A DNA stretch of 63,594 bases, counting the filler, from Klebsormidium nitens (Eukaryota; Plantae; Klebsormidiophyceae): assembly GCA_000708835.1 (NCBI GenBank). It is 6 parts of 6 records of this genome, joined end to end, with 100 filler letters (N's around TTAATTAATTAA, not from the genome) between each part and the next. Parts side by side here need not be neighbours in the genome. Positions count along the whole stretch, not along the records: positions 61,622 to 63,594 come from DF237724.1; 5 more parts are not named here. One strand, written 5' to 3'. The notes beneath the pieces are model-generated. The model was not told the DNA's origin. It saw nothing but the letters and a program-made list of their open reading frames with translations, and searched no databases. The stretch's first letter is position 1. Each line of letters begins with the position of its first letter. The position numbers and the translations under genes were made by a program. Below, piece by piece: positions 61,658 through 63,594 of the stretch.

Positions 61658-63594
61658 GTGCCTTGGGTGTTGCCGCTAGAGCAAGGGGGGTGCGTCGGGG
61701 GTGCACTCTTTGGGCTAGACGCGAAGGCGTGGAGAGGGGGGCCGCAACTTCGAGTGTTCGTCGTGAACAACCCTGGGGAGAAGCCCGTGGTTTGCGTGTT
61801 CTGGGGAGAGAATGCGCACTGCAGCGATGTAGAGTGTTCGGGTTCAGAGCGGTGTTGGCATCTTGTGGGGGTGCTCTCAAAGCAAACCTTGCTTCTGATT
61901 GAGCGCGCAGCAGACGGAGGCGGGGTTGAGGCGAAGCAAACCCTTGCTGAGCGGCGGGCAGAAAGGGTTGGACAGCGGGAAGCCGGAGCGAGGAGGCTCT
62001 TTGTCTGCAACGACCCCGCGTGCCGGCGACCCGACTCGAGAGTTGCGTGCACCCACCAAGAGACCCTCGAGCCTTGGGAGTGCCTCTCTGCGGCGGCGCT
62101 CGACATGGGGCATAGCCACAAGCGAATTGACACCGTCATGAGTCGGGGGGGAGCTCGTGTCACGAGCCTTTGTGAACGGTGGGGCGAGGAGGGCGTGCGA
62201 CGGCGGGAGGAGGCCCGCCACTTTTGCGCTCCACGACCCGCCGAGTTGCTCTCTCCATGCGGCCGTCCATGGCAGCTGGAGAGTAGGAGAGGGTCTCTAA
62301 CGACGGCTGGGGGGCGCTATCCGATCACCACCTATCGAAGGGTCTGCCGCATCGCTCCCGGGCGCGAGGCGGCATGCTGCTCAGTAGCCTACGACGGCCA
62401 GGTGCGTCCAAACTCCCTCATCGTACAGATTTCTCCATCGACTCTGTGCGCACCTCTTGTATTGTTGGTATGCTGCTTCCGAAGGTAGCAAAGCATTGTT
62501 ACTGAGATAATCAAACATGTACTTGGCTTTGACAATGGGAGAAAAGTTTGCTTCGGTCCACAATCCTTGTCGAGGCTCCAACGGTACCAGGCAACGAAGG
62601 ATTGACAGTTGTTGGATTGCCTCTTCGCGAAAGATGTGCTCCAACTCTTGTTCACGGCTCTCGAGTTTTGCTCTGAGGTCCATGCATTCAGTTCGATTGA
62701 GACCGGCCAGAACGGCTTGCGTCTGGAAGCATCTTCCGAGCTCTGTAAGTTCATGGTAATGTTTGACAAGCCTCTCTCTTCGTTCCTTGATGACTTTTGC
62801 TCGTCGACCTTCCAGAGCACTGTTGAAGCCCGTTGGACCTCCTCGCTCTCGAACAGCAAGCACTCGCAAGTCCGACTCTCGATAGAAGCGGGTCTTGATG
62901 AAACCTAAAGGATGAGGAGCCCATTGAAGTGAAGAAAGGTCCTTGATCTGATACTTTGTTCGGGCCTCTGCTGTGGTCAAGCAGTCGAACGCGCGGTGCA
63001 AACCAAAGTTTAAGCAACTGAGGCATATCGGCGAACCTTTATGAGGATGCAAAGGCCATCGCAATTCGGTCCACTCATTGTTGCATATTTTGCAACAGTC
63101 CCGAGGCCAAACGGATTCAAAATGTAGCGGACCGGGCGCGACGCTGCACGGAACGGGAAACTCATGCATCATCGTCCCGATAGCCGCTTGGGCACCTTTG
63201 CAGGTACACGCTGAAGTTGCCAAGTCCGGAAGTCCGAGCAAGCCATTCTCACCTACCACGCTCAAAGCGGACGCAAATCCGTCGTTCAAAACCATGACAG
63301 AGCAGTACAAAGTATCCGATCTACTTTGAACGTGCGACTGAGGTCACCCCCCCCCCTCTATTCTTGCAGGAAGACGGCATCTTTAACTTCTCCGGCACCA
63401 ACCTCGTCTCGCACGGCCTCCTCTTGCGCAACCACTTTGCGGCGGCCCTGGGGGCGGCCCATAGCCTCAACTTTGAGGCGGGGGACATGGCCACGAGGTG
63501 CCTCGAGGGGCCGGACGTCCCTAGGCTGGACGACCGGGTGTTCGACTCGGCGATGCAAGCCTTCAACGACCTCGCCGCCCGGCCTCGGATCCAA
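61658..63594 (+). mobile_element. KDZ (Kyakuja-type) transposase 5' part, partial: SWIM-like fingers plus CxC4-like cluster
   Basis: Exon to 62401 (GTGCGT donor) joins 63370 in phase 0, giving CCSVAYDGQ|EDGIFNFSGTNLVSHGLL. C-x4-C...C-x-H motifs HCSDVEC...CWHL and VCNDPAC...CTHQ. The catalytic domain lies outside the window. Confidence 0.75.
62381..63295 (-). CDS. Intronless ~304-aa protein: degenerate F-box, C4 zinc finger, XPA C-terminal-like domain
   Basis: LPDLATSACTCKG; CKIC...CLSC; LTTAEARTKYQIKDL...RFYRESDLRVLAVRERGG. Lies antisense within the KDZ intron. Confidence 0.7.
   Translation of the reverse strand: MVLNDGFASALSVVGENGLLGLPDLATSACTCKGAQAAIGTMMHEFPVPCSVAPGPLHFESVWPRDCCKICNNEWTELRWPLHPHKGSPICLSCLNFGLHRAFDCLTTAEARTKYQIKDLSSLQWAPHPLGFIKTRFYRESDLRVLAVRERGGPTGFNSALEGRRAKVIKERRERLVKHYHELTELGRCFQTQAVLAGLNRTECMDLRAKLESREQELEHIFREEAIQQLSILRCLVPLEPRQGLWTEANFSPIVKAKYMFDYLSNNALLPSEAAYQQYKRCAQSRWRNLYDEGVWTHLAVVGY

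Follow-up and report, generated by a model that had tools for sequence, protein, structure and literature searches.

A conserved opposite-strand gene nearly fills the intron of a probable Zisupton-like gene in the charophyte alga Klebsormidium nitens

Introduction

PIF/Harbinger and MuDR are two-gene DNA transposons, in which a second, probably DNA-binding protein is encoded beside the transposase by a gene that is adjacent and not intronic. In the KDZ group, the canonical Zisupton combines the KDZ transposase domain with CxC4 and SWIM modules, and KDZ elements carry extra open reading frames (ORFs) of unknown function (PMC11588098). The KDZ1 transposase of Cryptococcus is overlapped by an antisense non-coding RNA (PMC11588098), and known KDZ passengers (TET/JBP, for example) take the form of adjacent genes (PMC12730594). 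Both Zisupton and Kyakuja have been reported in the green alga Chlamydomonas (PMC8226300). One isoform of platyfish Zisupton is reported to contain an F-box, and F-box::CxC7 fusion genes occur in fish (PMC12062965), so that an association of F-boxes with KDZ elements has precedent. Here, we analyzed a 1,973-bp genomic piece of Klebsormidium nitens (DF237724.1), which occupies positions 61622-63594 of the window, the whole stretch of 63,594 nucleotides (nt, filler included) under study. The piece lies inside a gene, referred to below as the host gene, and carries an ORF on the opposite strand of its intron. The original prediction for this DNA described that ORF as the cargo of a KDZ transposase by comparison with fungal KDZ elements, whereas the organism here is a charophyte alga.

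Results

An opposite-strand gene nearly fills an intron of the host gene

The host gene is read on the plus strand in 2 exons, each cut on its outer side by the edge of the piece (Table 1). Exon 1 closes with ..RRVCRIAPGREAACCSVAYDGQ at 62401, and exon 2 resumes at 63370 with EDGIFNFSGTNLVSH.. The donor reads CAG/GTGCGT (62401/62402), the acceptor TTGCAG/GAA (63369/63370) follows a C/T-rich tract, and without splicing the plus frame meets a stop at 62488. Exon 1 corresponds to residues 301-555 of the K. nitens protein GAQ90660.1 (P0037; 1,207 amino acids, aa) with 73% identity, ending exactly at 555, and exon 2 corresponds to residues 556-630 with 92% identity (61% to P0026). In a joint alignment, the last column of exon 1 directly adjoins the first column of exon 2. 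In K. nitens, the annotated models of 3 family members, GAQ86525.1, GAQ90660.1, and GAQ93582.1, are spliced exactly as ..AYDGQ-ED(G/A)IFNFS.., and the relatives P0026, P0030, and P0035 (~50% identity) are uninterrupted at the junction, reading ..CCSLSYDGL-ENGIFNFSGANLISH.. (YDGL-ENGIFNFS). The predicted splicing across 62401/63370 restores the conserved zinc-cluster reading frame of the host. A 968-nt GT-AG intron splitting YDGQ-EDGIFNFS had been proposed originally, and the splice signals, the frame, and the alignment to residues 555/556 confirm all of its coordinates.

The minus strand of this intron is occupied almost entirely by one intronless ORF, which spans 309 codons from a TTG at 63310 to 62381; the ATG at 63295 is the start kept in relatives. 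In total, 894 of the 968 intron bases (92.4%) code for the nested gene, leaving 74 nt of intron upstream of its ATG. Among 2,000 shuffles that preserved dinucleotide composition (mean 123, maximum 278), none had an open stretch as long as the 320 codons seen here. The nested ORF reads the donor splice site as codons (..T-H/L..) and ends inside exon 1, where its last 21 nt can be read directly from the sequence as coding on both strands. The intact antisense ORF covering about 92% of the intron and its overlap with the exon were thus described correctly from the outset. Ahead of the pyrimidine tract of the acceptor lies a run of 10 C (63347-63356). On the minus strand this run is G10, with a TGA in frame directly after it, and lies 51-60 nt ahead of the nested ATG; P0008, a relative introduced below, differs over this stretch, and its frame is open into exon 2.

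The arrangement is conserved among copies

The same intron and gene were looked for in other copies. Relatives of the nested protein, about 10 in all, comprise 7 cluster representatives obtained by word search and further cluster members, with identities of 46-92%, and the start methionine is conserved among copies (MVLND/MALND/MNET). On its upstream side, P0008 (343 aa) continues with ..GEVKDAVFLQ.., which is EDGIFNFS read in reverse complement, indicating the same arrangement of exon 2, intron, and gene in that copy. P0011, which consists of host exon 1 with the read-through tail of the window, and P0002, a nested protein, are each listed on a 12,122-bp contig. P0007 (264 aa, 46% identity) is full length without stops, and its C-terminus, LPVVCN plus stop, is codon-for-codon compatible as a reverse complement with VAYDGQ. 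The chance of such compatibility is estimated at ~1e-5 per random hexapeptide, which argues that the exon overlap is old. Degenerate copies were also found, P0009 and P0010 being 2 halves of one copy and P0006 having a frameshifted tail, as expected for a repeated element. Among the relatives found, none was free-standing or annotated in K. nitens at NCBI, and metagenome scans aimed at the DNA of other copies gave no match. Judged from these alignments, the nested gene is a real gene family that has been kept as protein down to 46% identity, together with the 21-nt exon overlap. An integral accessory gene fits at least as well as the proposed cargo, since all relatives with readable context sit in this one intron and none of those found is a free-standing cellular copy.

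Gene calls of the host family that were left unspliced all read ..AYDGQ, then V from the donor GT, and then at least 4 unrelated tails (VRPNSLIV.., VS(I/V)N/T..QNH.., VRSSSHH.., and VRARSNL..), which points to a conserved intron position with differing contents. At the same site, other copies hold other intron sequences, and the 51%-identical lineage is intronless there. The gene-bearing intron is best explained as typical of one sub-lineage of copies, the window copy included. A repeat search at the intron borders revealed no terminal inverted repeat, target-site duplication, or other inverted or direct repeat. Apart from a chance-like internal one of 15 nt (62945 and 63307), no inverted repeat was seen, and the flanking GACGGC repeat merely codes for the protein's own DG..DG. 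The Rfam scan of the piece gave no RNA family match, which argues against an intron-hosted small nucleolar RNA or similar.

The nested protein is predicted to contain an XPA-like DNA-binding core

The nested protein contains a C4 zinc finger, as had been recognized before, and its 4 cysteines are kept in every copy that covers them, including the relative of 46% identity. Pfam returned no match for the nested ORF at E up to 1, XPA_N and XPA_C included, and the single-sequence PDB search gave no match. When the family profile was compared with the PDB, XPA (1xpa, 1d4u) ranked first with a weak E of 0.25, and the alignment was in register over the finger and the next helix (CxxC..CxxC..(L/I)T..EA...Y..KD). 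The full-length AlphaFold model is poor (predicted local distance difference test, pLDDT, of 42), with the N-terminal ~45 residues at 25-29. The model of ORF residues 57-193 reaches a pLDDT of 72 and shows a long helix after the XPA/Rad14-like subdomain. With this domain model, a VIA-align search of 48,161 chains, in which Z below 8 is not decisive alone, placed human XPA (6j44_A) first (Z 6.6, root-mean-square deviation 1.4 Å over 45 residues, 22% identity). The other members of the top five were 6ro4_G (XPA in TFIIH), Rad14 (5lcl, 5g32), and 2enk, the putative DNA-binding domain of SLC30A9; the full-length model had the same outcome. The top 10 Foldseek matches were all Rad14/XPA (best E 1.1e-3, TM ~0.3), and lower structural matches included MerR-type and excisionase-type winged helices. 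The family-invariant residues concentrate in ORF residues 141-191, that is, in the subdomain and just downstream.

As 3 independent methods agree, each of them weak, we accept an XPA-like zinc-finger DNA-binding domain as the likely core of the nested protein. The XPA-like character originally proposed is therefore moderately supported by the top rank in all 3 methods, although no sequence match was significant. The suggestion that the protein is also F-box-like gained no support. For the N-terminal ~45 residues, Pfam contained no match, and no F-box chain appeared in the PDB profile search covering the N-terminus.

The host protein is probably Zisupton-like

Both plus-strand exons were used as separate queries, and the host family was searched by word search, by an exhaustive search of 1.84 billion proteins, and by cluster look-up. 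Exon 1 had 11 relatives by word search and just 10 cluster representatives in the exhaustive search, which suggests that the host family is confined to the Klebsormidium-type lineage. The family is multicopy: over 20 distinct relatives, located on different contigs, share 49-83% identity, and some carry frameshifts. The piece corresponds to residues ~300-630 of a host protein of at least 1,207 aa. P0013 changes frame just before ..AYDGQ and then reads the window ORF 62374..62505, the middle section of P0030 is arginine-rich and out of frame, and P0029 is among the copies listed with frameshifts.

The Pfam family PF18717 (CxC4), described by Pfam as associated with KDZ transposases, matched P0026, P0030, P0036 (K. 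nitens GAQ86525.1, 1,121 aa), P0037, and P0038. These matches always lie over the junction region, with E from 4.7e-4 to 0.1 and 12.9-20.5 bits, all below the gathering cut-off of 26.9 bits; the best covers residues 502-574 of P0037 (E 4.7e-4, 20.5 bits). The window exons, scanned separately, had no Pfam match. The cysteine cluster is split by the intron, and the first ~19 codons of exon 2 complete it. Upstream in exon 1, a SWIM-type-like zinc motif can be read from the translation. UniRef labels the aligned region of P0021 (K. nitens KFL_002740160) 'SWIM-type domain-containing', and Pfam SWIM had no match in the window pieces or the relatives scanned. The ESM Atlas placed P0026 beside CxC4/CxC5 clusters (0.96, 202/256 features) with a low recognition value (1878), and the downstream host part reached only 0.87.

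The catalytic KDZ domain (PF18758) gave no hmmscan match at E up to 5-10 in P0035 (599 aa), P0036, or P0037, all of which are partial models. The PF18758 model presumably leans on fungal sequences. The last ~130 residues of P0036 and P0037 (..GRAGIFIACCQDRAPLGYHWLKGGES..VVEDASCNAQEW..VVDRFHSG..) may resemble the start of a KDZ catalytic core; Pfam has no match there, and the models end at that point. P0036 is named 'HMG domain-containing protein' by UniRef, and Pfam found no HMG box in it at E up to 10. The original assignment to a KDZ transposase is thus only partly supported, by the sub-threshold CxC4 matches, the Atlas lead, and the SWIM-type label, and the catalytic domain had no match in relatives of 599-1,207 aa. 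Taken together, the host appears Zisupton-like and is probably a transposase; its KDZ/Zisupton identity is plausible, and somewhat favored by us, but unproven.

Features of the piece

The features are listed in Table 1. Minus-strand ORFs of 197 and 114 aa also occur in the GC-rich exon at 61622-62400 (65-70% GC), which is open in several frames. Within this interval, relatives were found for plus frame 1 only, and the extra open frames on both strands look like by-products of composition, not genes.

Table 1. Coordinates of the host gene, its intron, and the nested gene in the window.
Feature	Position	Strand	Basis
Nested gene (antisense), 304 codons counted from the conserved ATG, then TGA stop (62381-62383)	62381..63295	-	ORF, relatives, shuffle test
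Dual-coding 21 nt, stop included	62381..62401	both	SVAYDGQ on plus; LAVVGY and stop on minus
Host exon 1 (upstream), 5' end cut by the piece edge	61622..62401	+	260 open codons, ending ..CCSVAYDGQ
Spliceosomal intron, GT-AG, phase 0, 968 nt	62402..63369	+	Splice signals, alignment of exons to spliced model
Host exon 2 (downstream), 3' end cut by the piece edge	63370..63594	+	75 codons from EDGIFNFS
SWIM-type-like zinc motif, C..HC....C.....CxH (CVFWGENAHCSDVECSGSERCWHLVGVL)	61793..61876	+	Read from translation
CxC4-like cysteine cluster, first part, split by the intron	62240..62401	+	PF18717 matches in relatives
Nested protein, conserved N-terminal ~45 residues	63161..63295	-	26 invariant positions among 5 copies
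Nested protein, C4 zinc finger CxxC-x19-CxxC, ORF residues 73-99	63014..63094	-	Conserved cysteines
Nested protein, XPA/Rad14-like alpha/beta DNA-binding subdomain (predicted), ORF residues 109-157	62840..62986	-	Models, structure searches

Discussion

We assign a probability of roughly 60% to the reading that the piece is part of a Zisupton-like (KDZ) transposase gene, or a recent derivative of one, whose conserved zinc-cluster intron is filled in antisense by an XPA-like gene. The host would be a multicopy gene for a cysteine-rich protein of at least 1,200 aa, most likely such a transposase or derivative, and its CxC4-like zinc cluster would be split at a conserved position by a phase-0 GT-AG intron. 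The intronless opposite-strand gene would almost fill this intron in a single sub-lineage of copies. Its predicted product of ~304 aa would consist of a conserved N-terminal segment, a C4 finger, an XPA/Rad14-like domain, and a long helical tail. Encoded by the element, this protein would probably bind DNA and act with or on the element, in an accessory, architectural, or regulatory role. Because only 74 nt of intron lie upstream of the ATG and the stop lies in exon 1, the 5' end of the nested mRNA would lie in exon 2 or beyond it, and the 3' end in exon 1. Spanning both exon flanks in this way, it would necessarily overlap the sense transcript if both are expressed from the same DNA molecule. 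Antisense regulation is no more than a structural possibility of the layout. A bolder proposal, which we regard as speculative, is that a Zisupton-like lineage of streptophyte algae keeps an XPA/Rad14-like factor of its own in antisense within the intron that splits the zinc cluster of the transposase. Synthesis of the accessory protein and antisense control of the transposase, through double-stranded or small RNA, would then be physically coupled in one compact module.

Several observations weigh against this reading. PF18758 was not detected even in host models of 1,100-1,200 aa, every CxC4 match falls below the Pfam gathering score, and the Atlas recognition is low for P0026 and reaches no further than 0.87 downstream. 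None of the lines of support for XPA is strong by itself (family profile, E 0.25; VIA-align, Z 6.6; Foldseek, E 1e-3 and TM ~0.3). The proportion of G or C at third codon positions (GC3) also differs sharply between the nested gene (0.53 over 62381-63310) and the host exons (exon 1, 0.70; exon 2, 0.88), which do not share a codon-usage regime, and a separate origin could account for this. The undetected catalytic domain, together with the annotation of copies as ordinary genes in K. nitens and the lack of visible element termini in the 1,973-bp piece, would suit a host that is not mobile at all: a lineage-specific, expanded cellular family, perhaps domesticated from a KDZ element with its zinc modules kept, in which the antisense ORF is an ordinary nested gene. 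Such a family would not readily explain why paralogous copies (49-83% identity) are so numerous and why some of them are degenerate or carry frameshifts. Moreover, the combination of CxC4 and SWIM is the Zisupton signature (PMC11588098), and confinement to one lineage, with 10 representatives among 1.84 billion proteins, is a pattern typical of a transposon family. We consider a cellular family unlikely.

The compositional contrast also bears on the idea that the 968-nt block is a secondary insertion, which would be cargo in the true sense: a small mobile unit or a captured gene would have entered or replaced a pre-existing intron and would be tolerated owing to its removal by splicing. GC content is 51% in the intron and 65-66% in the exons; the site holds unrelated intron sequences in other copies and no intron at all in the 51%-identical lineage. 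The low GC3 and the copies with another intron or none keep an origin by capture alive, at a rather low probability. The borders, though, carry no inverted or direct repeats; codons of the ORF run across the 5' splice site into the exon, where the ORF ends, an overlap that is kept in the relative of 46% identity. Furthermore, no free-standing homologue was present among the relatives found, and the resemblance to cellular XPA is much too slight for a gene captured recently; the nested gene looks less like a recently captured host gene. An antisense frame that is open by chance or in decay, without function, would be compatible with the lack of a Pfam match, with close copies (87-92%) that might stay open by chance, and with the broken copies (the frameshifted tail of P0006 and the halves P0009/P0010). 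This explanation is effectively refuted for the family as a whole, and we hold it to be very improbable, given a stop-free, full-length relative of 264 aa at 46% identity, invariant residues that cluster in the folded domain, conserved cysteines, and the clear shuffle test.

If the host is a working KDZ/Zisupton element, it would be, in the literature searched, the first charophyte one with a conserved opposite-strand protein gene in a transposase intron, and also the first KDZ-type gene paired with an XPA-like DNA-binding protein. It would provide a concrete two-protein model that can be put to the test in a transposon superfamily of which little is understood, as well as a natural case of obligatory sense/antisense overlap between the 2 genes of an element. 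If the host instead belongs to a domesticated gene family, the finding shrinks to a tidy nested gene of modest interest.

Comparison with known systems

Like the proteins of Zisupton-type KDZ elements, the host protein is large, multi-exon, and cysteine-rich, and it has a putative CxC4-like cluster and a SWIM-type-like motif. It differs from them in the lack of a detected PF18758, in zinc-cluster matches that stay below threshold, and in its occurrence in a charophyte. The extra gene differs as well: it is protein-coding, lies in the intron of a transposase-like gene on the opposite strand, and overlaps an exon, whereas known passengers are adjacent. The nested protein shares with XPA/Rad14 a CxxC-x(17-19)-CxxC finger followed directly by an L(I/T)T..EA...Y..KD..L helix and a predicted alpha/beta subdomain. 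Its N-terminus and its long helical C-terminus differ from those of XPA/Rad14, it shows no significant sequence match (E 0.25), and its gene occurs only in copies of a single repeated element. The repair XPA orthologue of the alga is a different protein.

As in eukaryotic opposite-strand intronic genes, a complete gene lies inside the intron of another gene, and as in PIF/Harbinger and MuDR, a second, probably DNA-binding protein would be encoded by the element beside the transposase. In contrast to all of these, the nested gene here takes up 92% of the intron and has 21 coding bases in common with an exon, which leaves no room inside the intron for a promoter or terminator of its own. The layout would unite two known kinds, the antisense gene nested in an intron and the DNA transposon with several genes, and it is unusual rather than revolutionary.

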